A stretch of DNA of 64,000 nt, taken from contig CM106585.1 of assembly GCA_048013815.1 (NCBI GenBank), positions 4,216,001 through 4,280,000 on the forward strand. The letters are read 5' to 3'. Of this stretch, positions 1 to 52,068 are shown piece by piece; position 1 is the stretch's first letter, and each line of letters opens with the position of its first letter. The translations under genes were made by a program, and so were the position numbers. Under the pieces are notes generated by a model. It had not been told where the DNA came from. It made no database searches and saw only the letters and a list, made by a program, of their open reading frames with translations. The stretch comes from Setoptus koraiensis (lineage: Eukaryota > Animalia > Arthropoda).

Positions 1-24
1 ACCTGTCCGCCTGTTCACCTGAGT

Positions 25-74
25 TGTGGTCACTCTGGCTGCTGTGGTCACTCTGGCTGCTGTGGTCACTCTGG
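25..74. repeat. 18-bp tandem repeat (TGTGGTCACTCTGGCTGC), about 2.8 copies
   Basis: Units start at 25, 43 and 61, read directly from the sequence. Confidence 0.9.
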
Positions 75-832
75 TGGTTGCAGTGGTGGTTGCAGTGGCC
101 GTGTTGTGGCGACACTGCTAAACTGATGCCACAACAACTGACGGCCGAGTAACGGCTCAACTGGCCGCTCGGCCGACGGCTGACCGCTGGACGCACGGCA
201 GCTGGCTCAATTGGCCGCTGCTGTGCGCAAATATCTTACTTATATCCATGAGCTCATACACAACGTCGGCGTTACGTAATGTCGGCGTTACGTAACGTTA
301 TGCATACGCCAACGTTATGTGACGACGACGTTGTGCTCAGGCCGACATTGCGCATGCATTGCACAGTAAATATTACATAAGTGGCGACAATATATAATAA
401 TAATATGGTTATCATTAGTATAACGCATGTATAACCAAATAACTGTCACCTGTCCCTTGGCTTGGCCCTAGCGGACAGGTGAGCCAGCGCAGTGCATGAG
501 CAGTGGCCAGCGCATGACAGCAATGGCACATTGAGCGGCGGTTGACAGCGGCAACTGTGACAGTTGACAGTGACAGCAAATAATAATCCGCATCCATAAT
601 GGCGAAATTATTCAACGTTGAGCGCGCCATTGTCGACCTCTCATTACTCTTGCATAATTATCCTTTGTTTAACCTTGTCTGCGACAACTGGCCGCTGGAT
701 GCTGCCAGCCATACGCATACTCGCCGCTGAGAGGCCGCCAGTGTGTACGCGAAGTGTCAGTTGGTCACTTGCAAAATTTGCCCAGTTTCTTGTGCGAAAT
801 CTCTCAATTCTCGCACTGGGCAAACTTTACAT

Positions 833-910
833 TTTTATTTTTATTTGCATTTATATTTGTATTTATATTTGTGTCTATATTTGTGTCTATATTTGTGTTT
901 ATATTTACAT
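833..910. repeat. Degenerate AT-rich 6/12-bp tandem repeat (TATATTTGTGTC-like)
   Basis: Seen directly; it produces the spurious (IYIC/LYLC)n ORF tails at 618-949. Confidence 0.8.
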
Positions 911-1814
911 CTAAGCGAGCGCAACACAGCAGGCCAACGGGCAGCATAACTGGACAAGTGGGCGCCTCTCAACATACGCTGCTGTTATTATTTTTATTAA
1001 TATTATTAATATTTTTCAAACCGGCCGGCCGTCACAATGTTGTCCGGTTGCGTTGTGCTGTCCGGTTGCGCTCGGTCGTAATCGCTGTTGGGCGCACTGT
1101 CTGGCGTGCCAGAGATGGCCTCATTGCGAGCTCATTGCACAGCAGCGGCAGCAGCAATCAACAACAAACAATAATCATACAATAATAAAAAGACAACAAG
1201 TGGGTGAGCTTAATTATTGCGTAATATCACGATACATTCGTTGCATCATGTGTCAGGCATGATGGATGCGTTGCGTCGGATGCTCCCAATTAGCGCCGGC
1301 TAATACACACACACATGGCGCATTTGGAGGCTCATTTTTGAGCATTCTCGGCCATTTTCGGGCATTTTTGAGCGTTTTTGAGCGCTTCTCGGATGCCTCT
1401 GACAGTGTCTTGTGAGTGTCTCTCACTCGAACACTTTGAGCGGCCGCAAACGTCGCCCGCTCGACACTCCGAGGCGACTAGTAACCCTTACGTAATGACC
1501 AGTAACCCTTACGTAACGCTGTCGCATGACAATCATGAGCAGCAGTCATGAAATGCACAGTTATTGCGGGCGCAACTGGAGTTATGAATGAGCTCATAAA
1601 CAAAATAGTATCGCCTGTCACGTGAAAAGTGTTTGCTGTGTCGCAGGCCGGCCATTGTTGGTGTCGCTAGTGTCGTCTGGGCCACTTCCGCTCGCCCGTC
1701 CGCTGGCCCGTCAAAAGAGTGTTGCGTCAGAGGCTGCCAGCGACAAACAACCGATGACGCATTTATTTATGTGTGATATTTATCACAGTGGCGCTCATTG
1801 TCGTTGCGATGCGA

Positions 1815-1890
1815 CCGCAACAACAACAGCCACAACAACAGCCACAACAACAGCGACAACAACAGCCACAACAACAGCGACATCAACAGC
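1815..1890. repeat. ACAACAGCC 9-bp / (ACA)n microsatellite
   Basis: Seen directly. Confidence 0.85.
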
Positions 1891-2500
1891 AATCTCGAAA
1901 AACGTTTTTACACTTTTGCATTTGGACTTTTTATTTGGATTTTTGGATTTTGAGGCCAAGTGATGACGAGGACAGTGTGTGCGAGTATCAAGGTAGCGGG
2001 CGCAATTAAATTGCGCATCGCGATCGCCATTGGTTGTTGGCCGCTGTCATTGATGCTAACGGGCAACTTGTAACCGATATAAGCGAGCACAAGCGAACAT
2101 AAGCAGATTAGCAAACAATAATGGGGCTTAGCGTGCGTAATAATGCGGCCAACAGCAGCCGGCCACAAAAGCAGTAGCAGCGACACAAACAAACACAGCC
2201 GGCGAGACAGAGATTTACAGTTATCTTGTTTATCTCTGGCATTGTGGCCTTGGTCTTGCCAGCGAACGGGCCGGCGAGTCGGCCGGCCGGTCGGTCGGCG
2301 AGTCGGCCCGATGGTCGGTCAGCGCATCGGCCAGCCCGGCAGAAGCCAGCGGACGGCCCGAGGAGAAGCCGGCGCTGAGCGTGGCGGCCACAATGCGTGT
2401 GCGGATAACAGTGAGCGGCTATTATGAGTAATATGATTAATCATATCATGGCAGCCTGTCAGCACAATGAATCACAATATCAACACGGCTCGTACGGCTC

Positions 2501-2552
2501 ACATATCTCGCATATCTCACAAGTCTCGCATATCTCACAAGTCTCGCATATC
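2501..2552. repeat. 18-bp tandem repeat (CATATCTCACAAGTCTCG-like), about 3 copies
   Basis: Seen directly. Confidence 0.8.
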
Positions 2553-5500
2553 GCATATATATTCATATCGGCCGGCTCACGAGACCCACGAGACTCGCCA
2601 GACTGGCCAGAGTCGCGAGACGCCAAGCGACGAGACGAGGCGCAATGAGACGAGATGCGACGAGGCGCCAAGCGATGAGACGAGCGACTATAATTGCGAA
2701 CAGATTGTTGCGTAACAGTGAGCACCAACTGAATAACTGGTCAAGTGGAGTGAATTACCGTTGCTCGACGGCGCTCAATGGTGCTGTGTGGCGTTCAATG
2801 GCGCTCTGTGCCGCTCAATGGTGGACAACAACAAACAACTTGTTCCAATGATTATCCCATTTTTATATTTATATTTCTTTCTTTGCCTCTTAACGATTTT
2901 ATGCTCTTTATTATTATTATTATGGTCTCGTTCGTTTGCAACAACAACAGCAACAACAACAGCAACAACGACAACATAACAGCTGCAGGCGATCATTGCA
3001 TATACTCACACAATTTATCTCTCAACACTGTGCTGGCATGGTATAGATAACGGCGGATAATGGCGAGTAATGTGTGCGTAGACTATTTATTTGTAGCCCA
3101 TTGGCGTCGATGAATGAATGGTCCGTGAATAGGCTGACCATGATACGCTCATGACGCAACATGGTGAATTTTCATGAGTGTTGGCCGGTTGGTGAATAGC
3201 GTCAGACAACGACGACGCCAACACAACAGTAACGGCCAACACAACAGTAACGGTCAACGGGTAACATATGGCCAAACGATGATGATTAAACGAGCATTAA
3301 TCAGGTGAGATATGATTCGCATCATGAGCAGCGGCGGCAACAACTTGCCAGCAACTGCTATAATATCAGCTGACCGACTGACCAATTGGCAGCAGTTAAT
3401 CACTCAAACTATTAACTTGATCATTTGCTAACCTATTATCGCCTGCTCATCGTCGTCATGATGCCATCATCTGACCGTTTGCTGCCGCTCGCTTGTTGGC
3501 AGCAACTTGGTGCTCACAAGCAACTTGTTGCCTCTGCATGTTGCCGTTGGTGGCGTCGTTGGTGCCGTCGTTGGCGCCGTCGGTGTTGCCGGCAACTCGT
3601 GATGACCGAGCCATACGTTGCACGGTTACGTAATGCCGGCCTGTGCCACACCGATGCCGGCATGCATGTCCAGTCAATAGCGAGCGACTGGATTGGGCGC
3701 TGCAGCCGACGGACGCCGTTACGTAATTTGTTGGCCGCTGTTGTTGTTGTTGTTGGACAGAGTAAATGTGAGCTAATATAAACAGTCTTGTGACTGGCAG
3801 TTGTAACAGGTGGCTGTTGCGGCTGTCACAGCGATGGGAGACACACAAACAAGGCGAGCAAGGGCGACAGGCGACGATATGCGCCAAATAATTTATATCT
3901 CGCATTTATATCTAACTAAGTGCTTACGTAAGATTGTCCCTGTTGCTGAGTCAGCGTGCACTGTCAGCGTAGACGCGCCGAGATAGCGTCACCTTGATTA
4001 AAAAAGGTGATGCTACCTGGCCCAGCTACGGCCGTCAGCTGACCATTATGAGCTGATGATTCGCCTGTGTGAGATGGTGCAAGATTCGGCATGAGCACAG
4101 GTGAATATTTGCAAAATTTATGCAACCTGTTGCTGCTGCTGCCGACGTTGCTGCTGTTGTTTTGGTGCCAACATGGCTCTGTCAGAGCTCTGTCTGTTGG
4201 CCAGCCCTGACAGTGTCAGGCTGACACTGGCAACGATGGCCGCCGCGCCAGTGATAGCAGCTCAGAGATATAGTTGGCTGGCAACTGATGAATTTAGATG
4301 CTAACAGGTTGTTGTTGGTTGTTAGTGACCACTGATTATACGCACAAACAAAATTTCGGCGCTTCATCACATGGCCGGTCGCTGGCGTTGCGCTGGCCAA
4401 AGTTGCGCTGGCCAAAGTTGCGCAACTTGCGCAACTTGGAAGCCAACGATGGACAGAGAATTTTAAGAAGAAACTTCTTTCTTTCTTTTAAATAGTCGCT
4501 GTGTGTTGCTCATGGGCGAACTTCAAATTCTCTCGGCGCATCCACGCAGTTACACACACAGTTACAGGTGAAGAATCAACAACGGCAACAGGTTGTCGTT
4601 GTTGATTCTGTTTAAGTTGCCGTGGCAGCTCCGCCAGAATCGGCTCACATCCAGCTCATCAGACGACTCAGGCTCACGGCGCGCAGCTCACAGCTCACGG
4701 CGAGCTCACGGCGGAGAGAGAGAGAGAAATTTAAATTATAACTAATATAACTCGCTCATTATTCGCCCGGCCCGGCCCACCGCTGCCCGTCGTTGGCGGG
4801 CCGGGTATCGCCAGGGATGCCCGTCGTCGGCCGGGTATCTTATCGTGTGTTTAGGTATATCGTTGTGCCAGCTAACGGTCCTGACAAGCTTCTGACAAGC
4901 TTGTGTCGCGCGCAATCCGAGGCGACCGGGTAGCTTTGTTAGCGGCGCTCTGTTGGCTTTGCGGGCAAGCGGGCGAGCTAGCCGGGTTCGTGCGTCAGTT
5001 GGAGTTGTTGTTGCAACTGAAGACTTTCTCGCCAACGAGTTACCTCAACAGGTTACTGCCGCTAACAACGAACCAAATGAATAATATAAAGATGATGAAG
5101 AAAAAGAAGATGCTCATCATGATCGTGCCGCTGCCACTAGTTGAGTTTGGTGTGCCCTAAATTGCAAAGTTCACAGTTTCACCTGAGTCACCTCTATCTC
5201 AAGGCGTCCACATTTGCTATTTACCGCTGCCACTACCGCCACCAGCACTCGCTCCAAAGAAGCTGGCGCTAATCTCTCGTCGAAGCTTCGCTCGAAGCTC
5301 GGCCGGCTCGCTGGCTGGCTGGCTGGCTTGCCTCTATCGCTTCTCAGCCGGCCGAGACTCGGCGAGCTGTGCGCCGGCGACTCTCGGCCGGCTGAGCCGA
5401 CCATGATGCTCGCCGATTTACATTATATTGTTCATGTTAGCGGATGATGCAAGCTGCAACTGAAGCTGCTTCGCTCAATGAGCGAACGCCGACAGAATGA

Positions 5501-7341
5501 ATGAATGGCTAACAACAACAACAACAACAACGACAGCAACGGCAACTGCCTCGGCCAGCAACAAGAAAAAATAAATGTTTGCTTATTACGTAATATTAAC
5601 CTAAATCGTGACTTGATCGTAACTTTTAATGCACTCATTTTATAGAAAAGAGCACTTGCAGTAACAGTTATAGCGGCGCCAACAACAACATGGCCATAAT
5701 AAGCGAAGGGCTCTCTCTCTCTCTCTCTCGCGCGCTCTGTATCTCGTCTCGTCTCGTTTCTGGGGAAATCTTGTCCGCTGCTTGTTTGCCGCTAATTCAA
5801 CAACAGCAACAACAGCAACAACGACAACGACAACAGCGGCAACGTCGGCCGATAGTCAACTGTCATTGGGACTGGTGGCATTGGCCAAAAGTGTGCGCCC
5901 AAATATGAGCCGCCGATATGCGTAAATAAATGAGCGTCATCATTGTCATCGACCGGTGCCATACCTGCCGCACCCGGCACATGACGGCCGTGATGTCGCT
6001 GGCGCGGGCCCACCGGTCAGCTGTGGCCCGCCGGTCAGCTGTGGCCGGCGACAGCGTCACAATCAGCTGCTTTGCGATCAGCTGGTGAGCAGCAGCAAAC
6101 TGTCAGTGGTTGCCAACTGTCATGACAGTTGATCTTGCCATGAGACACTTGACTCATTCGGCGTGCCATAGTGCACACAGGGCAACACGACGGTATACGC
6201 TAGACGGCGCAACTTGTTTTAAATTGTTCGTTGCGCAACTGGTCTGTTGATTAGTGTGTCGCAACAGATTGTTATCTTTGCAGTGCCGGGTCGCGCAATG
6301 TCAATTCGATAGGAGCCACCAATCAACTAACAAAACTAACTGTGCAATAAGATCTGACTGACAGACTTGATACACACTTGCTAGCTGCAAATCAACTAAA
6401 TCAATTGCCAACCTGGATAAATAGCGTTCCAAGCCACACACCAGAAACAAACAACAAGCTCTTTAGCGTGCCTAATGAGCCCAATTGAAACACTTAATGG
6501 CGACTGGTGGTGCAATCAATGCCATTCTCACCGACAACCCACGACGGACGAGCGACGACCGACAACCGCTGACCGTGCTGCCTTGCCAACTGCAGCGCCG
6601 CCAGCACTAACCAACTTTATTAAGCTCGCTAACTAATTAACTTAAACTCTCTCAACACAATTCAATGATAATAATATAATTTGTTTGATTGACGCCAGTT
6701 GCCGGGATCATATCAGCTAACCGCTGGCTGGTCTTGTTTAGATAATTCCGTTTTTGTTGTTATTGTTGTTGTTTCTTTTGGTGGTGGCTCGTTTTATTTG
6801 ATCACACACTTGCACTGTTGTCGATATAATTGATACTACCAACTGATAGTGGCTGAATCACAAATACGATTGGCGCATTATCGCGCCAAATTGTATTTTG
6901 CACTAGCACAAGTGTTGCCAGTCACTTTGTCCGGCTGCCGGGCTCGCCAGGCTGACCGATTGTGCGGTTTGGGGCCAATGTAGAGCCGAGCAACAAACAA
7001 ATTATGGCAAATGAAGGCAGACGGGCAAACAAGGAAATTGCGCCTGTCGTCTTACCCTGTCCGACACACAAACAAAAGCCCTATGACAGTGGCACTAAGT
7101 GAAATTAAAATTACACCATTAGTGCATTATTGCATTTGATTATCGACAAGATAGACAGCAGAAACTATCTGATCTCTTCTCTAGGTCGTTCTAGGTTGCT
7201 ACTTGGGATTAGCAACAATTATACAGGCTAATGATGGCCTGAGTGATTTCCAACAATATCTATACTGCGCAACTGGCAACTGCAACCACATCTAATGTAT
7301 ATTTGGGTGCAAATGAGATAGACACTGGTGCGATAAACCCA

Positions 7342-8564
7342 ATACCGTTGGTAGATGCGGCATTCACAGACCTAAGAGACGTCAACTGTACAGATAATCT
7401 GCATGACTTCGCAGTTGAAGTTGTGGTCACCTTATCTCAATTATGTGAGGAGACATCAAAACATCAGAAGCACCTCATGGATTACTTAGTCGATCAAGTT
7501 TTCACCCTTGAGGAAGCTTACCTCCGATCTGTTGCTAACGAGGAGAGCGCCAAATCAAGTAATTATACCAAAGTATTTACAGATGTTGCCGAAACAGCAT
7601 GTCCATCTCTAGTTTCCACTGATGATATATTGATGCACAAAAACTTCAAGCTCGTGGAGTTATTGTTGAAATGCCTAGAACATTACGATTTTGAAGTAGT
7701 GGAGGTAACTTTCGGATTCTGGTGGAGATTTGTTGAAGAAATACAGAGTAGTAGTAACAGTTCCAAGAATCCACAATTTGAAGATGCGATCAATAAATTA
7801 ATAATGGCTCTCATCAAGTTGTGCCAATGCGATCCAGATTCAGATACGGTCATAACAACAGAATTAGATCTGGACAGTTTTAGATGTAAAACTATGAATT
7901 TAATCAAGCATGCTCTATTTCTGAGATCTTTGGAGATGAAGAAGCCGCTAGAGAATCTTTGAGGTGTTGTGCAGCTATATCTCAATCAATTGTTGATTCT
8001 AGCGTCAGAGATCAGTTTCTATGTCAAATCATCAGACCTAATCTGGCTGCACTGCTACAAACGCTTAATCTTCAGCCATCTGATAACATGAAATATGATG
8101 AAGAACTTCCATCCAAGTATCTCGATAGGTTAGCCAATTTGTTTAGAGAATTGGACCTCCCTCACCATGATGGAGTTGGGCTGTCAATGAAAAATTACCC
8201 AGAGACTATTGATGACATGATGCGGCTCTTCAACAGATTCATTGAGAAGTGCCCTGAAGAATTTGTAGCTTGTCAAGCAATCCAATCAATCATCGAATTG
8301 AGCATATCATCTATCAGACTAGATCACCGAGATGCTAATCAAACTCTGGTAAAATTTTTGGTCCATTTCATCGAGCTGGGGCTCCCAGATAAGAGTTTGG
8401 CTCAGATTCGTGATGCCATTACATCACATTTGGGAGCTCGACTAGTTGATGCTGTGATAAAGGCATGCCTGTTCGATTTACCAACTCATTTTATTACTGA
8501 TGAAGCTGATATTTTGTATTTATTATTGCAATACGATAGAAATCTCTTTATATCTTGGATCGAG
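7342..8564 (+). pseudogene. Inverted, internally deleted partial copy of the neighbouring transportin-3 gene (three fragments)
   Basis: 7342-7924 = reverse complement of 12988-12406 (583 bp); 7930-8171 = rc of 11889-11648 (242 bp); 8184-8564 = rc of 11278-10898 (381 bp). I counted 13 substitutions in 1206 bp. Junction 1 frameshifts, and there is no 5' part or ATG context. Confidence 0.9.
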
Positions 8565-8668
8565 ACGACGAAATTTTTAACTGATCGACTAAACTCTGAC
8601 TAACACTCTGACGAAACTTGGACGAAATTTGAAAATTGGTGCACGAACAGGTGGAGAAAAGCGCTTAC

Positions 8669-8882
8669 CTTCATTTGAGCTGATGTCGCGTTCAACTCGT
8701 CGCAAACTGTCCGACGTTGATGCTGACATCCTGTCACGCAAGGGCTGATAGTTGTTAATGTCGATGATGCGAACTGGTTGCTGTTGATCACATTTATACA
8801 ATTGAACTGTGTCACCCAATATCAATAATAGGGCTAATAGAAGGCATGCTGTTGAGCCGGTAGCCCAATGCCGGGCTGCCAT
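8669..8882 (-). CDS. Putative first coding exon of an unidentified secreted or membrane protein (or a neuropeptide-like precursor)
   Basis: ATG at 8882 gives MAARHWATGSTACLLLALLLILGD, a signal-peptide-like start. The frame stays open to a strong donor AAG|GTAAGC (exon end 8669, phase 1). No family was recognised. Confidence 0.45.
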
Positions 8883-9500
8883 TTGATATGATGATCTGAA
8901 CAAATTTATCATTCTGAATTGGTACGATGTTCTTCTTGACAACTTCATGATGGAGCTCTTGGTAGAGCTAGTTGAATATGATTTGAATTTATTTTTGATT
9001 GATTTTTATGTTGATTTCGATGAACGGTATGAGTGGACAAATAGGACAAACGAGTGCGTGTAAATGGTGATAGTGGCATAGAATCGATGATAAACATCTC
9101 CTCTTGATGCTGGTGGGCTCTATCTCTTTCTTCTTTTAGTTTCTTTCATTTTCATTATTATTATTAACTTTCATCAATATTGATTGGTTGATTGTTATAG
9201 TTGATTGATTGCACTGGCTATAGTTGCTTCACCGAACTGATTGACCGCTAATTATTTCCGGCGCTACTGGTCACATTTGTTGGTTGGTAACTTTCTTTCG
9301 GTTAGGTGTATTTATTGATTTATTGGTGACAGATATTTCTCTCGTTCCTTGAAATGAAATGAAATTGCATTACATTTCATATATGTGCACACTCTAACCA
9401 AGACAAACCACAAATGACGCTAAGACGGCCAAACAACAAGACGATGAGAAAAGAACACACTCAAGAAGAACTTCTCGCCACTTACAGTTAGCCAGCAATG

Positions 9501-9512
9501 TGCGCATGCGCA
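9501..9512. promoter_or_regulatory. NRF1/Erect-wing consensus palindrome TGCGCATGCGCA upstream of MRPS24
   Basis: Exact match to YGCGCAYGCGCR in the divergent intergenic region 8949-10016. NRF1 is a known regulator of nuclear-encoded mitochondrial genes. Confidence 0.4.
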
Positions 9513-10016
9513 GTGTCTTAGTAACAGGTGTATTAGGTAACTGTCACTGGCGAGCTTGTCGGTCGGTGTGTTTGACGGCTCACAGATGGGGCCACTAACG
9601 CCATCTTCAAAATGCCCTCGCTTACTCGATGGGTAGGCCACTGTGTATAGCACAGACATGTGGACATGTGCATTTTATGCAATTTTGTAATCACGGTGTT
9701 CCCATTAGAAAATGGTACCATGGACGCATTAATTATGAAAACATGTGGGAGAAAGCGAACATGTGTTTACACTAAATTGTTAAATTAGTGCGCTGGAGAA
9801 GGTTCAGTTTAAATGGGATCTCGTGCGCTCTTTATGAAATATGTCCCGTTGCTCATTGTTTGTAGCATGAGCAGTTTAGTTTTGGCGATTCAAAACAATA
9901 AACATCTCGAGAAGCAAATGATTACTCTTGTTTAACTAGCCTCTCGAGACACTGTCAAACATTTAGTTCTTCAATCATTAGTGGTCATTTGGGCCTGATC
10001 GCTTGTTTGACCAACA

Positions 10017-10511
10017 ATGATTTTCACAAATATCCTAAGTTCAACATTGACCTCGAGGTGTTTGTTGAACGCCAGAAGGATACACACCACCGCAACTCTG
10101 TATAAGAAGAGGGCAGGTAGAAATAAACCAACTCGCAAGCATGACAAACCTCTTACCTATGAGCAAGCCAATCAGCCCTTCTATATTGGTGTGAGAAAAT
10201 CGTGGAATTCTTGGAATACAAGCGGATTCCCGGGAAGCTTGTGGGCAGCCGAAACAACTCACGAAGATATTCTAATCAGGAAATTTATCCACGGAACATG
10301 GATCAATATGCTAGAATCGGAAGTTATCATTAAACGACGGGCCAATTGTATATTCTTGAGCTATATCATTTGTAGAAACATAAATATACACCAGATCAAT
10401 TTTCTCATAGGCTACACAGAAGAAATTCTCAGTTATTTATTGAAGAGTAACGTTAAAGTTGAACTGCAAACTATTGATAATAAGAAGGAGCTTATTTATA
10501 AATACATATAG
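10017..10511 (+). CDS. MRPS24: Mitochondrial 28S ribosomal protein S24
   Basis: Presequence-like N-terminus (RRIHTTATLYKKRAGR), then PLTYEQANQPFYIGVRKSWNSWNTS and EDILIRKFIHGTW, typical of uS3m/MRPS24. Single exon; AATAAA near 10548. Confidence 0.9.
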   Translation: MIFTNILSSTLTSRCLLNARRIHTTATLYKKRAGRNKPTRKHDKPLTYEQANQPFYIGVRKSWNSWNTSGFPGSLWAAETTHEDILIRKFIHGTWINMLESEVIIKRRANCIFLSYIICRNINIHQINFLIGYTEEILSYLLKSNVKVELQTIDNKKELIYKYI

Positions 10512-10744
10512 AAACAGCGAATGGTGATTAAGATTTCGATATTCACAGAATAAATTAAGCCAACAAATACACTTGTGCATCTTTGGCATTGGTCATGAGC
10601 AAAACTGTGATAGGACATAATCAGTAGTTAGTGTGGAAGTAGTTGGTTCTATATCTGAGTGATTTCAAACGATTTTCTTGGCATGCTTATCTTCTAAGTT
10701 TTTATAATTATGTACAAGTAACAAAGATGATCCATTAAGACACA

Positions 10745-13700
10745 CTATTGATATAAACGAGCTAGGAAACGTACTCCAGTTACTATTTGCTTTACACTTT
10801 TTGCGCTTGACATTGTCTTTTTGAAATCTTCGAATTGCTCATTGGTTACTGAGACTATGCCTTGGATATTTGTTGATGGAAGCGTGGACACAGTGGCCTC
10901 GATCCAAGATATAAAGAGATTTCTATCGTATTGCAATAATAAATACAAAATATCAGCTTCATCGGTAATAAAATGAGTTGGTAAATCGAACAGGCATGCC
11001 TTTATCACAGCATCAACTAGTCGAGCTCCCAAATGTGATGTAATGGCATCACGAATCTGAGCCAAACTTTTATCTGGGAGCCCCAGCTCGATGAAATGGA
11101 CCAAAAATTTTACCAGAGTTTGATTAGCATCTCGGTGATCTAGTCTGATAGATGATATGCTCAACTCGATGATTGATTGGATTGCTTGACAAGCTACAAA
11201 TTCTTCAGGGCACTTCTCAATAAATCTGTTGAAGAGTCGCATCATGTCATCAATAGTCTCTGGGTAATTTTTCATTGATAATAGACTCTGGGCGGAGGTG
11301 CCTTCCATCTTGAGGAGGGTAAATGTGAGCGCACAAAACGCGTCTAGCATCTTGAATAACACTGTCTTCATTTCGGGCGATTTATTTACAAACTCATCCA
11401 CTAATATCGAAGCCACATAAAGGGGGCTAGAATTCTGTGGGTAACTTCGATAGAGATCAACCATAGTTTCTGCAATCCTTGGTGCCATCCACACTGGCTT
11501 GACGGATCGTAATAAATATCTTATTGTTCTACATGATCTTTCGATCGCATAACCATTCGCGGAGGCATACTTCTGCAATGTTTTTAAAAGTGTTGGCCAT
11601 AGTTCAGTTTCAATCAAGCTGATCAAATTTGGATACAGATTAGTAATATCATGGTGAGGGAGGTCCAATTCTCTAAACAAATTGGCTAACCTATCGAGAT
11701 ACTTGGATGGAAGTTCTTCATCGTATTTCATGTTATCAGAGGGCTGAAGATTAAGCGTATTTAGCAGTGCAGCCAGATTAGGTCTGATGATTTGACATAG
11801 AAACTGATCTCTGACGCTAGAATCAACAATTGATTGAGATATAGCTGCACAACACCTCAAGGATTCTCTAGCGGCTTCTTCATCTCCAAGATGGTCCAAA
11901 TTAGCGCAAAGATCTGTTAAAATGGCCACTAAACCGGGGCTATTTGTCAGATGTCTCGAAGCATTCGCATGGATAATTTTAGCTAATGATGAGGCTGACT
12001 CCCGGGCAAGCTGAGTTCTGTAAGCTGGATTACTTATTGCCGATAGCAAATATTTGATTGAAAGTTCTAGGAATGTAGGGTGTCGCTGAAAGTATTCATG
12101 TAGCTGACCGAGTATCTTTGACGTCGTGCTTATAATCTGTGGATGTACTTCACCAGAGGCAGATCCTATTTTGAGGACTAATTCACGTTTATTCTCAAGG
12201 AGTTCCATTATGTTTGGTGTAAACGTCTGAGAAGATAGAATGATGATCAGAAGTTCCCTTCTAATTGAAGTTTCCTCGTCCTTCAGTCCATCTATTATGC
12301 ATGACACCAAAAATAATATTGCCTCAATCTTTTCCCATGATGTTTTGAGGTCAGGGTTTAGTAAAGCCATGATATTGTTTTTCGCTATAAAGTCTGATAC
12401 GTTAGTCAGAAATAGCGCATGCTTGATTAAATTCATAGTTTTACATCTAAAACTGTCCAGATCTAATTCTGTTGTTATGACCGTATCTGAATCTGGATCG
12501 CATTGGCACAACTTGATGAGAGCCATTATTAATTTATTGATCGCATCTTCAAATTGTGGATTCTTGGAACTGTTACTACTACTCTGTATTTCTTCAACAA
12601 ATCTCCACCAGAATCCGAAAGTTACCTCCACTACTTCAAAATCGTAATGTTCTAGGCATTTCAACAATAACTCCACGAGTTTGAAGTTTTTGTGCATCAA
12701 TATATCATCAGTGGAAACTAGAGATGGACATGCTGTTTCGGCAACATCTGTAAATACTTTGGTATAATTACTTGATTTGGCGCTCTCCTCGTTAGCAACA
12801 GATCGGAGGTAAGCTTCCTCAAGGGTGAAAACTTGATCGACTAAGTAATCCATGAGGTGCTTCTGATGTTTTGATGTCTCCTCACATAATTGAGATAAGG
12901 TGACCACAACTTCAACTGCGAAGTCATGCAGATTATCTGTACAGTTGACGTCTCTTAGGTCTGTGAATGCCGCATCTACCAATGGTATGCATTTATCTAG
13001 ATCATCGGCTCTCATAATTTTCGTCCAGGAAGGGTAACACTGATATATTTTACCAACAAGCTTATCAATAAGACTGAGGTTTTTCAATATGTTCTTTTTA
13101 ACGTCTGCATCACATATTGAAGGGTCAAGTGCAAGGCTGTTAGTGATCTCTCGTTTCAGATCCTTAGATTCTCTTATAGTGCTCAGCCACCAATCTATAA
13201 CTTGACTGCACTTTGTTGTAAGGTAATCTTCAAACTCTTCTCTCCTATTAGCGCCGATCCTAACACCGCCACTACAAAAATGGTCAAGTGGTATTGTAAT
13301 TTGTTCTAAAATATCAGCAAATATATATCTATTTGTTAATGCCCTATTCAGTGTAGCTTGATCCTGTCGAGAATCAGCAAGATTGTAATTTAAATTTAAT
13401 TTCTGAGCTATGTCTTCTATAGGATTAATCCACTGACTCAATAGAATGGTTAATTTAACTGTGGCCTCAGCTAATTGTCCTTGTACTGGTGTATCTTGTA
13501 TCCTTTGTATATGATTTAATATTGAGTCCTTGAGTGAACTGTAACAATCTAAGGGTAATTCATTGAATTGACGATCAATTTTATGTTTCAACATATTTGC
13601 TGCGACATAACAACATTCGGGACTTTGATTAGCTATGAGTAATTCATCACAGATTTTCCAAGCGAAAATAGAGTTTCTCAGGCTCTCAAGCCATTTGGTA

Positions 13701-13831
13701 GCTGGATTTTTGTCTATACTAGGATCACCTGATAGTACAGTATTGATGGCCGTTACAACTGTTTTCATATCAGGCAATTGCGTCAATGGGGGCTCACTGA
13801 TACCCATACTTCCAGTGTCTCCGTGGATCAT
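10745..13831 (-). CDS. TNPO3: Transportin-3 (TRN-SR, importin-beta family), intronless
   Basis: N-terminal KWLESLRNSIFAWKICDELL...CCYVAANMLKHKI...FNELP matches TNPO3. Also VVEVTFGFW, IERSCRTIRY and YPETIDDMMRL. ATG at 13831; about 1028 aa. Confidence 0.9.
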   Translation of the reverse strand: MIHGDTGSMGISEPPLTQLPDMKTVVTAINTVLSGDPSIDKNPATKWLESLRNSIFAWKICDELLIANQSPECCYVAANMLKHKIDRQFNELPLDCYSSLKDSILNHIQRIQDTPVQGQLAEATVKLTILLSQWINPIEDIAQKLNLNYNLADSRQDQATLNRALTNRYIFADILEQITIPLDHFCSGGVRIGANRREEFEDYLTTKCSQVIDWWLSTIRESKDLKREITNSLALDPSICDADVKKNILKNLSLIDKLVGKIYQCYPSWTKIMRADDLDKCIPLVDAAFTDLRDVNCTDNLHDFAVEVVVTLSQLCEETSKHQKHLMDYLVDQVFTLEEAYLRSVANEESAKSSNYTKVFTDVAETACPSLVSTDDILMHKNFKLVELLLKCLEHYDFEVVEVTFGFWWRFVEEIQSSSNSSKNPQFEDAINKLIMALIKLCQCDPDSDTVITTELDLDSFRCKTMNLIKHALFLTNVSDFIAKNNIMALLNPDLKTSWEKIEAILFLVSCIIDGLKDEETSIRRELLIIILSSQTFTPNIMELLENKRELVLKIGSASGEVHPQIISTTSKILGQLHEYFQRHPTFLELSIKYLLSAISNPAYRTQLARESASSLAKIIHANASRHLTNSPGLVAILTDLCANLDHLGDEEAARESLRCCAAISQSIVDSSVRDQFLCQIIRPNLAALLNTLNLQPSDNMKYDEELPSKYLDRLANLFRELDLPHHDITNLYPNLISLIETELWPTLLKTLQKYASANGYAIERSCRTIRYLLRSVKPVWMAPRIAETMVDLYRSYPQNSSPLYVASILVDEFVNKSPEMKTVLFKMLDAFCALTFTLLKMEGTSAQSLLSMKNYPETIDDMMRLFNRFIEKCPEEFVACQAIQSIIELSISSIRLDHRDANQTLVKFLVHFIELGLPDKSLAQIRDAITSHLGARLVDAVIKACLFDLPTHFITDEADILYLLLQYDRNLFISWIEATVSTLPSTNIQGIVSVTNEQFEDFKKTMSSAKSVKQIVTGVRFLARLYQ

Positions 13832-14949
13832 CACTGATTGAAAATGTTAATGTAAAGAAAATATGCAATCTATATGAAATATTATATTATTATAATTAAT
13901 TTAGAGGACGTCTATGATTGGTGCAAATAGAGTGTTGTCTTGGTCACATATGAAGCGATATTGATTGTACGAGATGCAGTGTGAAATGAAGATGATACGA
14001 TAGGAATTGTTGAATTGCCCTTTTTGATTTTGCATCTGTTGCAAAATGTCTGCGCGCAAATGTGAGCGAACACACATTCAGTTGTGCATATTGCTAGAAT
14101 GTGCCCAAAATTCAAGAATGCACCTTCGAATTTGTGGCAGCCTCATAGGGCTTTTCTGCGTTGCACAAGGGTGGAACTTTGGAGCAGCGTGATCCGATGC
14201 GCGTTAATTCAGGCATTTTCCCAACTCTAGATAGAATTGAGCAAAGAGCGAATGCGAACATACTGCCCATATTGGTGAATTTCCTCGCACAAAAGCCCAA
14301 AATGAGCACCATTCGTTTTAGTTGGCTGGCCATCGATGCGGCACATGAATTTTTTTTCCTGGTCGGCAGCAAAACTCACGTGTTTCTGCAAACGCATTAC
14401 ACCAATACTGGGTGTAATATCACTTGTTAGAGAATTTTTGTGCACTCGCACATTGGTCTTTCTCTGAGTGTTCACTCTGCACAACTACAGCACATTACAA
14501 CTAAATTGAACATTCATTTAGCGCCGCAAAGTTCGCGCAGGGGGTAATAATCCTTGAATTATCACTGACTTCTATGCGTTTGTATCCCCCTTCACATGTG
14601 GATATTATCCCACTATTCATGGTATAAATAGTGCATTTTTTAAATTCTCGCGCGATGTGTATGAAGGTTTCCATCCCGGTGCCTTCCACACTGCATTTTG
14701 AGCACACACGCACAACCCGAAAAGCAGATCGCACAAGACCGTCCGGAATACGCACACCCGCGATTCTCAGCTTTGTGTGTACAAAGTCTCGCACAGAAAG
14801 TCTCTGAGAAGTGAGTTTACACCCGGTACAAGGCTAGCCACCACATTGCGTGCTCTTATCGGAATCCGAAACATTCATTCTACAAATATACTGTTGCTCT
14901 TATTATTATCGACATTCTAACATTATCTATCTAAAATTGGACATTCATA

Positions 14950-15330
14950 ATGAGCGGGGTTCACCCTAAAGCCTACCCGTTGGCCGATGCCAACATGACG
15001 ACCAAGATATTGAATCTAATTCAACAAGCCAACAATTACAAACAAGTTAGGCGAGGAGCCAATGAGGCCACGAAAACTCTAAATAGGAACCTCTCAGAGT
15101 TGATCGTCATGTCAGCAGATGCTGAACCAATTGAAATACTTTTGCATCTGCCATTGTTATGCGAAGACAAAAATGTTCCTTACGTATTCGTGGAATCAAA
15201 ACAGGCACTGGGAAGGGCTTGTGGGGTTCAACGTTCCGTTGTGGCTTGCTCTATTCTCCAGAGCGAGGGCTCGCAGTTGAAACCTCAAATTCAAAGCCTT
15301 CATCATGAAATAGAAAAGTTGCTTATTTGA
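14950..15330 (+). CDS. SNU13: SNU13/NHP2L1 (15.5K) k-turn RNA-binding protein
   Basis: HPKAYPLAD...[16 protein letters not shown]...[38 protein letters not shown]; 126 aa. Confidence 0.97.
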
Positions 15331-32300: not shown

Positions 32301-35242
32301 ATTATTTTCACGAAATCGACTGAGATCCGCTGAAAAATCATCTGAAAAATCGTCGCGGCAAAAAAGCTCGCAGCGCGCCTATTTCTGGTGCATTGGCTAA
32401 AAATTACCATTGGCTGCATGGCTAAAAATTGCCATTGATCACGCTACCCGTTAACAGTTGTCGGCCCACTGGCTGTTTCCGATTTTCGGCTCTTCTGTTG
32501 GGGCCAGTGTTGGCCCCTTCCGCTTACCTTTGCTCACTCACTACATTGTGTTTGATTTAACAGACACAGGGCCCAGAGTGCGTGCGCTTGCGTGATACAA
32601 ACATATACATATTATATTTTTGTATATATTTTATATGTTGCATCGGCGGGTTTTGCGTAAGCCGTCGATACAATATACAAGATATAAGGCCGACAACGGC
32701 GCCGCCGTGACGCTGGAAAGTGCATAACTTTCTCCTGTCCGACAAACGCACTCGTTCCTATTTTTGTTTTGTATGCACGTCGCCACGAGATGTTTCGATG
32801 GTTTTATTTTATACGTTTCTCTGTCTCTGGCCGTTTCTGCGTCGCTGGGGCCATTACTGTCGCGGGCATTATGCAGTTGATGATGGTGGCGGCGAATTTC
32901 CACCGAAACAACTGCAGCGACTCCACAAAATACACGCACGTAAAAAAGCCAGCAGCGTGCAAGTCGCTTAGAGAGAGAGAGAGAGTTTTAGAGAGCAAAG
33001 AATTCGCTGCGTTCGGCGTTCTCGGCCGTTCGCCGTCGAACGCTCGCTCCGGCCGCCCTCCGACGCCGCGGCGCTCCGTGCGGCTCAGCGGCGCTGCGGC
33101 GCTGCGGCCGGCGATTTTATAGCTGGCAGACACGTCAGAGTCGCCACCAGCGCCACTTATAATGAGCCGGAGAATATGGCGTAACTCTCTCTTTCGCTAA
33201 TAGTGCCCGCCACGTACCGCGTGCCGCGGCGTTGCGCGTATGCACACGCGCGTATTGCGTCGCGCATACTACGTAGTACATTGTTCATGCCCGCGAACAT
33301 TGTTCGCTGTCGCAATCGCGCAAACAATCTATTCTAATTCCGAGCGCCAATCCTCTTTTTGCGCCGTTGCTGGCCCCTGTGGCCTGGCTCGTGCTGCCGG
33401 CCACTCGTTTTTTGGCCGAGCAGGCGCTCGAGTGACCGACGTGCAGCGCTGGCGCGCGCTGGTTCCGTTCCGGCCAACCGGCCCCGGCTTACGGGGGCCC
33501 ACAGAGCCCAGAACGCGGACCGGCCAGCGGCAAAGAACCCGAGCGTCGCAGAGCCTAGAACCCAAAGGGGCCCAAGAGGCGGACAGAAAGCGGGGCCAGC
33601 CTTGCGAGCGGCCAACGCAGGGCCCAAACCGAGAAGGGGCCAAAAAAGGGCCGAGCAGAAAAAATCGAATCGGTTGCCGCTGGACTGATTACGGAAACCG
33701 GTTATGTGTGACACAGTGGCGACAGTGGCGACATTGGCGACTGTGCCACAGGGCCGCAGTGGGCCCTTTGGGGGCCGCGATGGCGGCGTCGTTTCGCCGC
33801 GCTAACACCATTTGGCGTGTCGGCCGCGCTATTACCCTTGCCCGGCGCGCGCGGCCGCTAACCGTCCGGAGTCCGGACCGACCGGACCGCGGGCCTATAA
33901 TAACGTATATGATATGTAATGCGGCGCTGCCATGCAACACCGGGCAACGGCGCCGCGCCGGCAATCATATCTCGCGCTAACACAGCGATATGTTGCCAGA
34001 GAATGCGTTGTTAGCAGTTGTGCAGTTTGGCGTGGTCAGTTAAAAAGCAACACGACAAAAATGTGTGTCACATAACCAGTCCTGCCCACCGCTGTCGGCC
34101 ACTGCGCTCAACTGACCAAACCCGACTGGTCCGCTGTTGGCGAATCCGCTCAACTGACCGGACCAGTCGGGTTTGGTCAGTTGAGCGCCAATCGGTTAGT
34201 TGTTACGAACTATTACGGATGTGGCCGCTCCTCCGGCGCCATCTGTCCGCTCCTGTCCTGCTGGCCCCGTTCTGCTGGCCCGTCCGCACGGCTCGGCTCG
34301 ATTGGGTTCGGTGGGTCGGGCCGCTGACCAGTCCATCTGTTGGACTGGCCAGCGGTGGTGCGCAAAGGCCGCGGCTCGTTGCAACGACAGGACGCACCGT
34401 AATGGTGCGCCCGTCGTAATTTTGTGCCTCTTTATGCACGAAACAAGTAATGGCAAACACATTGTGTGTGTGTGTGTATTTGTGTACAATGATAAAAATT
34501 TGCATCATCGTTCTCACAGCAACGCCGACGACAACAATGCCACAACAGCGTCGCAATCAATTTGGCGCCCGCTCTGGCCAGCGCCGGCCCGACTAGCCTC
34601 TGGCCGGAGCTGACCAGAGTTACCTCTAGCCGCCCCCAGTTGCCGGCTCGAGACACGCTGGCCGCTGGCGAAGGTTGGGCGCAACAACAATGGCCACCTT
34701 ATGTGTGCCGTCGGCTCGTATGCGGTCGTAGTGGGTCGTATGTGGTTGCAGTTGGTTGTTGGTGTGCAAGCCAAAAACTTGTGTGCCGGTCACTGGTGCC
34801 AATCACGTTGCTTCGGCATGACACTTGGTGTGGGAGTTTTTTTCTCTCGGTTCGCCAGCGCCGCGCCACGCCGCACATTGTGTGTACATTTGATACACAT
34901 TGTTGGGCCGCTTGTTGTCGCTGTTACTGGCCGGTGCTGTTACCCAAGTTATCGCATCGCTTGCTTTCGTTGAACCCAACAATCGTTGGCGTTCCAATCA
35001 TTATTTACTTGTTAACTGTTGTCGTTGGTGTCGTTGTTGTCGTTGTTGGTGCCGCTGTGTCGCTAGCACACCGTTGCTAGGACACCAACTCCATGACCAC
35101 GCCAATCTGCACAAATTGCAATATCGCCAATATCGTCAAACTCACAACTGGCCTCGCAACAGCCTCGTCGGCCAGCTTATCCAGTCGATATCGTCCAACG
35201 ATAATCACACACAAGATATGGACATTCGAGTCCAATGATTGC

Positions 35243-35343
35243 TCGTTGTTGTCGTTGTCGTCGTCGTTGTTGTTGTTGCTGTTGTTGTTGCTGTTGTTGT
35301 TGCTGTTGTTGTTGCTGTTGTTGTTGTTGTTGTTGTTGTTGTT
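35243..35343. repeat. (GTT/GCT/GTC)n trinucleotide microsatellite
   Basis: Seen directly; source of the poly-C/V/L/Q ORFs. Confidence 0.95.
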
Positions 35344-36307
35344 TGCAATTACAATTGGTCGTCATTTGCAGCCTATTGCTCATTGACACGCATGAGGGGC
35401 AACTGCGCATGCGCGCAGCGCTCTAATTGTAGTAATTGTAATTGTTAGTTTGCGCGTTACCTAATCAACGATTATTATTAAATATTGATATTGTATTATG
35501 CGCATATATTAAACAGCTTGCGATTGAACTCGCTGGCCACTGGCCAGTCTGAACAACACAACACAACACAACTCAACACATACACTCATATTTGCATATA
35601 CGTAATATGCATAAATGTCCGAGCAACGAGAGAAACAAGCCGCTCACGTCACACTGTCAATGTGGGTGTGACAGTTGTGAGCTTTACCTTGTGAGCGGCA
35701 TGAGCGGCTCAGGAGGCTGCTGAGTGTAGCGGTCGCAAATTGTGACAAAGTCTGCTCGGCTGCTGAGGCTCAGCACGATGTCAGCACGACGGCAAAGGGT
35801 GAACAGATTGATTGACAGATTGATTGCGATTTGCAACAATCAACAATCAACAATCTACTTGCAAACCGTTGAACTGTTCAACAGAGCTGTTGTTAAACAA
35901 AACCGTGCGTCTCCATGTCCATCGGGTCTGTGTTGATCGCCCACGAGATTAATCAATGAGCCTGGTTGCTGTTGTTGTCGTCACAAGCGACTTTGAGCTG
36001 TTAATTATTTACTATCACCATTTATTATTTACTGTCGTGCTCGCTCACTTGCTGTAAATGTAACTGTAAATCGGCCTGCGACCAACTTACTTGTCAGAGT
36101 CACTTGTCAGAGTCACTCGTTAGACTCGCTCGTTGGCATTCCTTGCACTCGCAATTCGGACGCTTTGCCGGTGCCGCTGCTCGTTACTTGTTAGTTGAGT
36201 GCCGTTGTATTCGGCAAATTACAAGTGTCGAGTGTGCAATTATAGTTTTGCATACTTGTTTCGTACAAAATTCCGTCGTGTCTCTGTCGTGTCTCTATCG
36301 TGTCTCC

Positions 36308-40022: not shown

Positions 40023-41481
40023 GGCGCCGCTGCACCAGTTGAGCCGGTCGGCGGTGTTGCGCTGATTGCAGCCTGTGCGCGCTGGTGCTGCCGGCGAGGT
40101 CATCGAACTTGGCCCGGCGAGAAGCCCGTGGCCCGCGCTGCAAAATAAATCGCTAAATCGAGGCTCTCGCTGTGTTGTCGTTGTTGATGTTGCTGTTGTT
40201 GCTGCTGTTGTTGCTGTTGCTGTTGGTGAGCTTTTTTGTTGGTGGCGCGCTGGTCAGTGCTGGTCAGTGCTGGTCGGTGCTGGTCAGCGGTGCAGCCACT
40301 ATACAACCGTGCAGCTATACAACCACCGCACCACAACTATGTGCGCTCATTTTACGATTGCTCATCGCCGCCGCTAACTGTTGAGATGATGTTGGCCTTG
40401 AAACGCGCACACACACACACACTCAGTCGCGGATTCCGTTAGTTGCTGACCAGCGCACACACACACACACACACACGCGCGGATCAATTGGGGGCCTTCG
40501 AAAGGCACGCAACGGAGCGAATAGCGGACGGCCGCCAACAGCCGAGCGGCCAATAGCGGCCAGCAGTGGGAACGGACACTCGCTGTTGTTGTTGCTGTCG
40601 TTGTTGGCGTCGTTGTTGCTGCTGCTGTTGCCGTTGTTGGCGTCGTTGCTGCTGTTGTTGCTGTTGTTGTTGCTGTTGCTGCTGTTGTTGCTGGTGGTTC
40701 GGTGCGGCGCGCTGATGCAGCCCAGCTCCGAGTGACTCGCTGCCGATTGGCGCTGATATGTGTGTGCTCTGGCGATGTGTGTGCGAACCGGCAACAGCTA
40801 GCGACCAGCAACAACAGGCTGACAGTGAAAGAAGTTGGCCGAATTCTTCGCTCCTTGGGCCAGTTCTCGCTGACCAGCACTGACCAGCGCCGGCCAGTGG
40901 ATGCCAGTGCCAGCATCGCTGCACCAGGCAACCGGCTCAGACCATCATCATTATCTCGAGCGCCAGGCAGGCGGGCCAAGTTCGATGACCGCTGCTCGAT
41001 GCTATCTCTCCCACAAACGGGCACACACAGAGGTACTGTGCTGGTGCAGTGATTAAACAGGCACTTCGGCCACTGGCCACCCCCGTGCGCAGAACCCAGC
41101 CACGGCGCAACCGGCCCATTGCGATAATCGGCCTGGCGCACACGCCAGCGGGGGCCCGCACTGTCCGAATGTTTGATCACACGATAGCAAATGAGTTGAG
41201 TTGACACACACACACACAAATAACTGTTTTTTACGTTGCTGGCCACTCGTCGTGCCTGGCCTCCTCCTCCGCATCCAGTTATACACGCAGTGTGGTGAAT
41301 GTTGCTGTCGTTGTTGCTGTTGGTTGCTGTTGTTGCTATTGGTCGTTGTTTGCTCGCTGTTGTGCAGCCTTTGCCATGACTGTGTGTCCTGTTACTTTGC
41401 TGCGCCACTCCGGTCAGTCTGCTATGCGCCGCTCTGCTCCGGAGTGCAACTTTGTACTCTATACTTTATGTTTTATACTTT

Positions 41482-47796: not shown

Positions 47797-52068
<4,272 letters not shown>

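Follow-up and report, generated by a model that had tools for sequence, protein, structure and literature searches.

An inverted, three-piece copy of transportin-3 in a gall mite genome is probably a by-product of DNA repair

The 64,000-nucleotide stretch of the Setoptus koraiensis genome analysed here (contig CM106585.1, positions 4,216,001 to 4,280,000; hereafter the window, whose own numbering is used for coordinates) contains the transportin-3 gene (TNPO3) and, a few kilobases away in the opposite orientation, a second and broken copy of part of its coding sequence (CDS). The question raised by this locus is whether such a copy does something for the animal, for instance as a source of antisense or hairpin RNA against its parent, or whether it is debris left by DNA metabolism. 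The findings presented here suggest that it is probably a by-product, without function, of the repair or replication of DNA, and that it probably carries another allele of TNPO3. Rather than a singular device, the copy is the youngest-looking member of a recurring class.

Structure and junctions of the copy

The map of the locus is based on repeat finding together with a separate alignment of the copy against its parent. The parent occupies 10745-13834 on the minus strand as an intronless, uninterrupted open reading frame (ORF) of 1029 codons. The segment 7342-8569 on the plus strand is an inverted, collinear, partial duplicate of this gene made of three pieces (583 + 242 + 381-386 bp), which match the TNPO3 CDS over a total of 1206 bp at 98.9% identity, with the arms separated by 2323-5646 bp. 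A match of this extent (1.2 kb, about 99% identical) is far more than chance would give. Specifically, piece A (7342-7924, plus strand, TNPO3 sense) corresponds to parent positions 12988-12406 (codons 283-477) and shows 3 mismatches in 583 bp, all of them silent; blastn carried it outward, as a weaker match, to 7332. Junction 1 (7925-7929, plus strand) follows with the 5-nt filler GATCT, which shifts the reading frame, and a stop codon lies at 7960-7962. Piece B (7930-8171, plus strand) corresponds to parent 11889-11648 (codons 649-729) and differs at 5 of its 242 bp, with three silent mismatches and two within codon 692 (AAT to CAA, N to Q). At junction 2 (8172-8183, plus strand) the filler is 12 nt long, GGAGTTGGGCTG; it keeps the frame and reads GVGL. 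Piece C (8184-8564/8569, plus strand) corresponds to parent 11278-10898/10893 (codons 853 to ~980; 381-386 bp) and presents 5 mismatches over 381 bp, again all silent, the final 5 nt being doubtful. The two parent blocks missing from the copy measure 516 bp (12405-11890) and 369 bp (11647-11279). A first-pass annotation of the window had described 1206 bp of TNPO3 CDS in the opposite orientation, as three ordered fragments 2.3-5.6 kb away, with skips of 516 and 369 bp, fillers of 5 and 12 nt and no target-site duplication (TSD). The repeat search and the alignment agreed on the fragments, and every figure in that description proved correct.

This structure is unique in the assembly. A genome-wide search returned the sequence twice, as the parent and its inverted copy, and the flanks on either side (6000-7341 and 8570-10016, 1.3-1.4 kb each) were single-copy. 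No TSD or terminal inverted repeats (TIRs) were found at the copy, and no diverged TNPO3 homology was found in its flanks. It has no poly(A) and ends at about codon 980 of 1029, 49 codons before the TNPO3 stop, and neither skipped block is bounded by GT..AG in the mRNA sense. A small excess of differences and indels was seen at the edges of the pieces (7347, 7914, 7332-7341, 7926). For the junction 2 filler, no source was found in the window when up to 3 mismatches were allowed, and an exact search of metagenome contigs with this junction gave no match. Rfam gave no match over 5000-15000.

At junction 1, the string AGATCTTTG makes a 9-nt insert that has a counterpart in the parent, some 19 nt upstream of where piece B starts, and a TTG microhomology at the same junction fits the next hop. 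The filler of junction 1 therefore looks like a templated mini-insertion from the parent. Altogether, the locus combines a nearby template, four junctions in cis, short microhomology, templated and untemplated filler, and no TSD, the features expected of template switching. From these scars we infer serial template switching during break repair or replication, of the type of break-induced replication mediated by microhomology (MMBIR), synthesis-dependent strand annealing (SDSA) or polymerase theta-mediated end joining (TMEJ), three routes that are indistinguishable from the scars here. In the proposed sequence of events, a break would have occurred at a site that is now split between 7341 and 8570, and would have been filled by copying TNPO3 from the opposite strand, 2.3-5.6 kb away. 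At least 4 polymerase hops (entry, two skips and exit), in addition to the 9-nt mini-hop at junction 1, would have yielded an inverted, internally deleted gene fragment. The first-pass annotation had already pointed to template switching or polymerase-theta end joining, and this suggestion gains from the 9-nt templated insert, the single-copy flanks and the fact that no marks of splicing, a poly(A) tail or a transposon were seen.

Ordered gene fragments separated by gaps are also typical of capture by a transposon of the Pack-MULE or Helitron type and, since the parent is intronless, a retrocopy of the TNPO3 message would leave no mark of intron loss. However, both of these origins are highly improbable at this locus, where the flanks are single-copy, neither TIRs nor a TSD accompany the copy, the poly(A) and the last 49 codons are missing, the skips lack GT..AG and the source lies just 2.3 kb off.

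Other origins were considered and rejected. Inversion through a staggered break does not agree with the topology, because the parent keeps both ancestral junctions (its ORF is intact over 10745-13834) and the copy keeps neither. Removal of the skipped blocks by splicing was dismissed for want of GT..AG at their borders, and an old full-length duplicate with diverged edges was discarded on account of flanks that hold no residual TNPO3 homology.

Silent bias of the differences and its possible sources

The copy is unable to make transportin. What it holds of TNPO3 is limited to codons 283-477, 649-729 and 853-980, with no start codon, no Ran-binding N-terminus and a frameshift at junction 1. The parent matches the transportin-3/importin-13 TPR domains and the importin-beta N-terminal domain of Pfam (PF24138, PF24139, PF24140, PF03810), while the copy matches the second TPR domain alone, which is complete within piece A. 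Two open frames cover the copy (7243-7962 and 7959-8603), neither of them headed by an ATG. The copy thus lacks the intact frame, the N-terminal domain and the full set of TPR/HEAT repeats of a functional paralogue.

Despite this broken state, the differences between copy and parent look like those of a working gene. Of 13 secure differences, 11 are silent third-position changes and the 2 replacements both fall in codon 692. At this codon the protein P0001, 92% identical to the parent protein, has the parental Asn, indicating that the N to Q change arose on the side of the copy. The proportions of silent (pS) and replacement (pN) differences between copy and parent were about 0.045 and 0.002, respectively (pN/pS ~0.05). 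The null expectation for a decaying copy next to a constrained gene is a pN/pS of about 0.5, and against it the 11:2 split has P = 3e-4, or 7e-5 when codon 692 is counted as a single event. The bias is present in all three pieces and on either side of the frameshift, and transitions exceed transversions by 9:4 among the 13 substitutions. Two inverted copies elsewhere in the same genome served as controls. A five-block mosaic of a Plexin-B exon (80-93% identity) gave a pN/pS of 0.56, and a three-block copy of TDRD5 (83-95% identity) gave 0.41. The inverted copy of nicastrin, with a single mismatch, was uninformative in this respect. In its silent bias, the TNPO3 copy is truly unlike older copies of its kind.

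How could a dead fragment acquire such a pattern? We infer that the copy carries another TNPO3 allele, one whose differences had passed the filter of selection while the gene was functional. This allelic look could arise by two routes. The insertion may be very young, perhaps still segregating, with the parent allele of its own haplotype masked by the majority allele in a pooled consensus; the overall divergence between copy and parent, 1.08%, is near the k-mer heterozygosity of 1.13% reported for S. koraiensis (PMC11920263). Alternatively, recurrent gene conversion from parent to copy may overwrite the copy faster than it drifts. The excess of differences and indels at the piece edges fits both routes.

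An allelic origin is thus compatible with a copy that has no function, but the same numbers could reflect selection on the copy itself. Under this explanation the copy would encode one or two truncated transportin fragments, starting at ATGs inside the ORFs 7243-7962 and 7959-8603 and kept by purifying selection, for example as cargo-binding decoys devoid of the Ran-binding domain. The pN/pS of about 0.05, so different from that of the decaying controls, both open frames and the complete second TPR domain of piece A would agree with such decoys. However, junction 1 shifts the frame, no ATG heads either ORF, and open frames are uninformative at 1% divergence. In addition, a word search of 5.8 billion proteins with the junction-bearing 214-aa ORF returned no similar protein. 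We consider the decoys very unlikely and prefer an allelic origin of the differences, because selection on the copy would have to act at once on two separate ORFs that have no start. More generally, there is a slim chance that the silent-only differences reflect real constraint, the young fragment being already in use either as a nascent source of antisense RNA or endogenous small interfering RNA (endo-siRNA), or as a truncated, Ran-independent transportin decoy.

Several points weigh against the combination of a repair by-product and another TNPO3 allele. Purifying selection on the copy would give an equally strong silent bias, and the silent changes are unpolarised between copy and parent. 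Moreover, at about 4.5% the silent divergence exceeds the k-mer heterozygosity of 1.13% severalfold, which means that either the source allele was unusually divergent or the heterozygosity estimate is too low for a pooled sample. Finally, the junctions are read from the assembled sequence.

The last point leads to the possibility that the copy is an artefact of the assembly, i.e. a chimeric or misjoined path of long reads. The published assembly was built with Flye and NextPolish from PacBio continuous long reads (CLR; 30 kb library) of a pool of more than 100,000 wild mites (PMC11920263). In favour of an artefact, these reads are apparently noisy and come from a population, and the copy is very similar to its source. 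However, 13 substitutions with a 9:4 transition bias and a marked silent bias are unlike read errors, and the copy has four clean junctions and unique flanks on both sides. The 24.25 Gb of reads are quoted as ~496x coverage, and no amplification step is described (PMC11920263). The concern raised by the first-pass annotation, that the locus might be a chimera of whole-genome amplification, is thus probably moot. Older, eroded copies of the same architecture also exist in this genome, indicating that the underlying process is biological, and we regard an assembly artefact as unlikely.

Antisense RNA and the neighbourhood of the copy

The minus strand of the copy carries 1.2 kb with about 99% complementarity to the TNPO3 mRNA. 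The copy could therefore actively supply antisense or hairpin RNA, through a minus-strand transcript starting at about 8882 or through read-through of TNPO3 itself; the resulting double-stranded RNA would be diced to small interfering RNAs (siRNAs) that tune transportin-3. The genome holds the machinery that such RNA interference (RNAi) would use, with at least 10 ORFs that bear a Piwi domain and 3 for Dicer, and the hairpin RNAs (hpRNAs) of Drosophila are believed to originate from the genes that they target (PMC10317233). A candidate host transcript can also be drawn: an ORF of 97 codons (8589-8882, minus strand), a putative first exon, ends 20 nt before the copy and contains a donor-like AAG/GTAAGC at ~8669.

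Against the minus-strand transcript, this ORF belongs to no known family and has no relatives, and no exon-like ORFs occur in the 17 kb downstream of it. If the message had a single exon, it would be terminated 45-75 nt into the copy by AATAAA signals on the minus strand (8524 and 8495). Read-through from TNPO3 would have to pass AATAAA at ~10441, 9324, 9316 and 8993. It would also traverse, in antisense, MRPS24, a gene located between the arms (10017-10511, plus strand) and convergent with TNPO3 (PF14955, E = 6.5e-54). The 2.3 kb between the arms, with this convergent gene and four minus-strand AATAAA signals, would speak against a single transcription unit. Besides, in contrast to known hpRNA loci, one of the two arms belongs to the target gene, and a genome search found no RNA-dependent RNA polymerase. 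Selection for pairing does not predict a silent-only pattern, and older copies of the same kind simply decay. We therefore judge a working RNA source improbable. The host gene proposed from 8882 in the first-pass annotation shrinks to the 97-codon ORF, the fold-back of a TNPO3 read-through meets several obstacles, and the natural RNAi circuit tuning the import of SR proteins, which had been built on them, found no support. A non-functional copy left by repair is the reading that we retain.

The 97-codon ORF deserves a separate comment. It gave no Pfam match and no relatives in the word search, and its atlas matches were small secreted peptides or peptide-hormone precursors, every one with a sub-threshold score (<0.9). 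It presents a signal-peptide-like start and a GKR site, and its tail is composed of short DNA repeats. Its codon-usage score could not be told from the null, although this score fails to part real small genes from random ORFs. Judging from its sequence, the ORF may encode a secreted peptide specific to the lineage, or be no gene at all.

As for the small-RNA machinery, the window itself contains, at 43516-44385 (minus strand), a Piwi domain that belongs to an Argonaute-family ORF of 925 codons. The three Dicer ORFs of the genome are long.

Regarding the parent gene, the relatives named by the word search were the transportin-3 of Aceria tosichella and that of Tetranychus urticae. Transportin-3 of other eriophyoids is about 48% identical to the parent protein, and that of T. 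urticae is 32% identical.

The surroundings of the copy are uneven in gene content. The ~17 kb to its left, which include window positions 1-7341, are gene-poor and contain GC-rich patches, trinucleotide (poly-Q-like) runs and no convincing exons, which is unusual for such a compact genome. Trinucleotide arrays of the GTT/GCT type are common to 35205-35381, 40554-40727 and 48743-49048, where they probably encode homopolymeric amino-acid runs in coding regions.

Recurrent inverted copying and comparison with known systems

The host is an intron-poor gall mite. Its genome of 48,755,295 bp is contained in two pieces (24,221,962 and 24,533,333 bp), in agreement with the two chromosomes and the N50 of 24.53 Mb of the published assembly (PMC11920263). 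Inverted copying is a recurrent event in this genome. An unbiased sample of 274 kb around the window contained two local inverted duplications. The same sample yielded a local inverted duplication in piece C1, at 179475-180401 and 190536-191456 when numbered as in the window but beyond its end (945 bp, 89% identity, arms 10 kb apart).

The nicastrin locus (C2:9555001-9575000) shows another side of this process. There, an inverted block of 666 bp at 99.85% identity (8417-9082 versus 11603-12268) adjoins one of 354 bp at 83.6% (7885-8235 versus 12278-12624). These identities mark the first block as a clear gene-conversion patch in an older duplicate, and show that gene conversion occurs in this genome. 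Because the assembly comes from a pool of wild mites, haplotype-mosaic effects should be kept in mind for all of its near-identical duplicates.

Taken alone, the TNPO3 copy is an ordinary young duplication of a gene fragment. Its value is that of the freshest example of a mutational process that recurs in the streamlined genome of this gall mite, in which coding DNA is copied locally, in inverted orientation and in multiple blocks. Older products of this process decay or receive gene-conversion patches. The copy also holds a methodological warning. In the consensus of a pooled population, a dead copy can mimic purifying selection, since what separates it from the parent is allelic variation of a gene under constraint. 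If the copy did yield small RNAs, it would give an uncommon view of the birth of a hairpin or antisense locus. If it were constrained, a regulator of nuclear transport, or a cheater on it, would have been caught at its birth in an animal whose genome is very small, the antisense variant being directed against an essential nuclear-import receptor.

Among known systems, the closest in mechanism are complex local rearrangements produced by serial template switching, i.e. the templated insertions of fork stalling and template switching (FoSTeS) and MMBIR, and polymerase-theta end joining (PMC8421209, PMC11293582). The TNPO3 copy shares with them several junctions in cis, a nearby template, an inversion, short fillers (one of them templated from 19 nt away), 1-3 nt of microhomology and no TSD. 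Unlike them, it is an event of kilobase scale in the germline of an arthropod, known from a single finished product, with a mechanism that is read from its scars.

In terms of possible function, the nearest systems are two kinds of RNA-producing gene copies. The hpRNA loci of Drosophila derive from target genes and have both arms in one dedicated transcript (PMC10317233, PMC10292708). Like them, the TNPO3 copy is an inverted partial gene copy with long, near-perfect complementarity to the mRNA of that gene, and the genome around it encodes Dicer and Argonaute. However, the dedicated transcript of those loci lies away from the target, whereas in the present case the target gene itself forms the second arm, with a convergent gene and several poly(A) signals in between. 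In mouse oocytes, endo-siRNAs arise from pseudogenes whose antisense or inverted transcripts form pairs with the mRNA of the parent gene. The TNPO3 copy resembles these pseudogenes in being a broken gene copy whose predicted antisense transcript could pair with the parent message. The mouse loci are defined by sequenced small RNAs, whereas the TNPO3 copy, compared with them as with the Drosophila loci, is known from DNA alone.

A further comparison is provided by the Plexin-B, TDRD5 and nicastrin copies of the same genome, which are likewise inverted, located a few kilobases from their source and made of several collinear blocks with skips. Those copies show 80-95% identity and either decay neutrally (pN/pS 0.4-0.6) or carry a conversion patch. 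The TNPO3 copy, by contrast, looks the youngest of the group and differs from its parent almost exclusively by silent changes.

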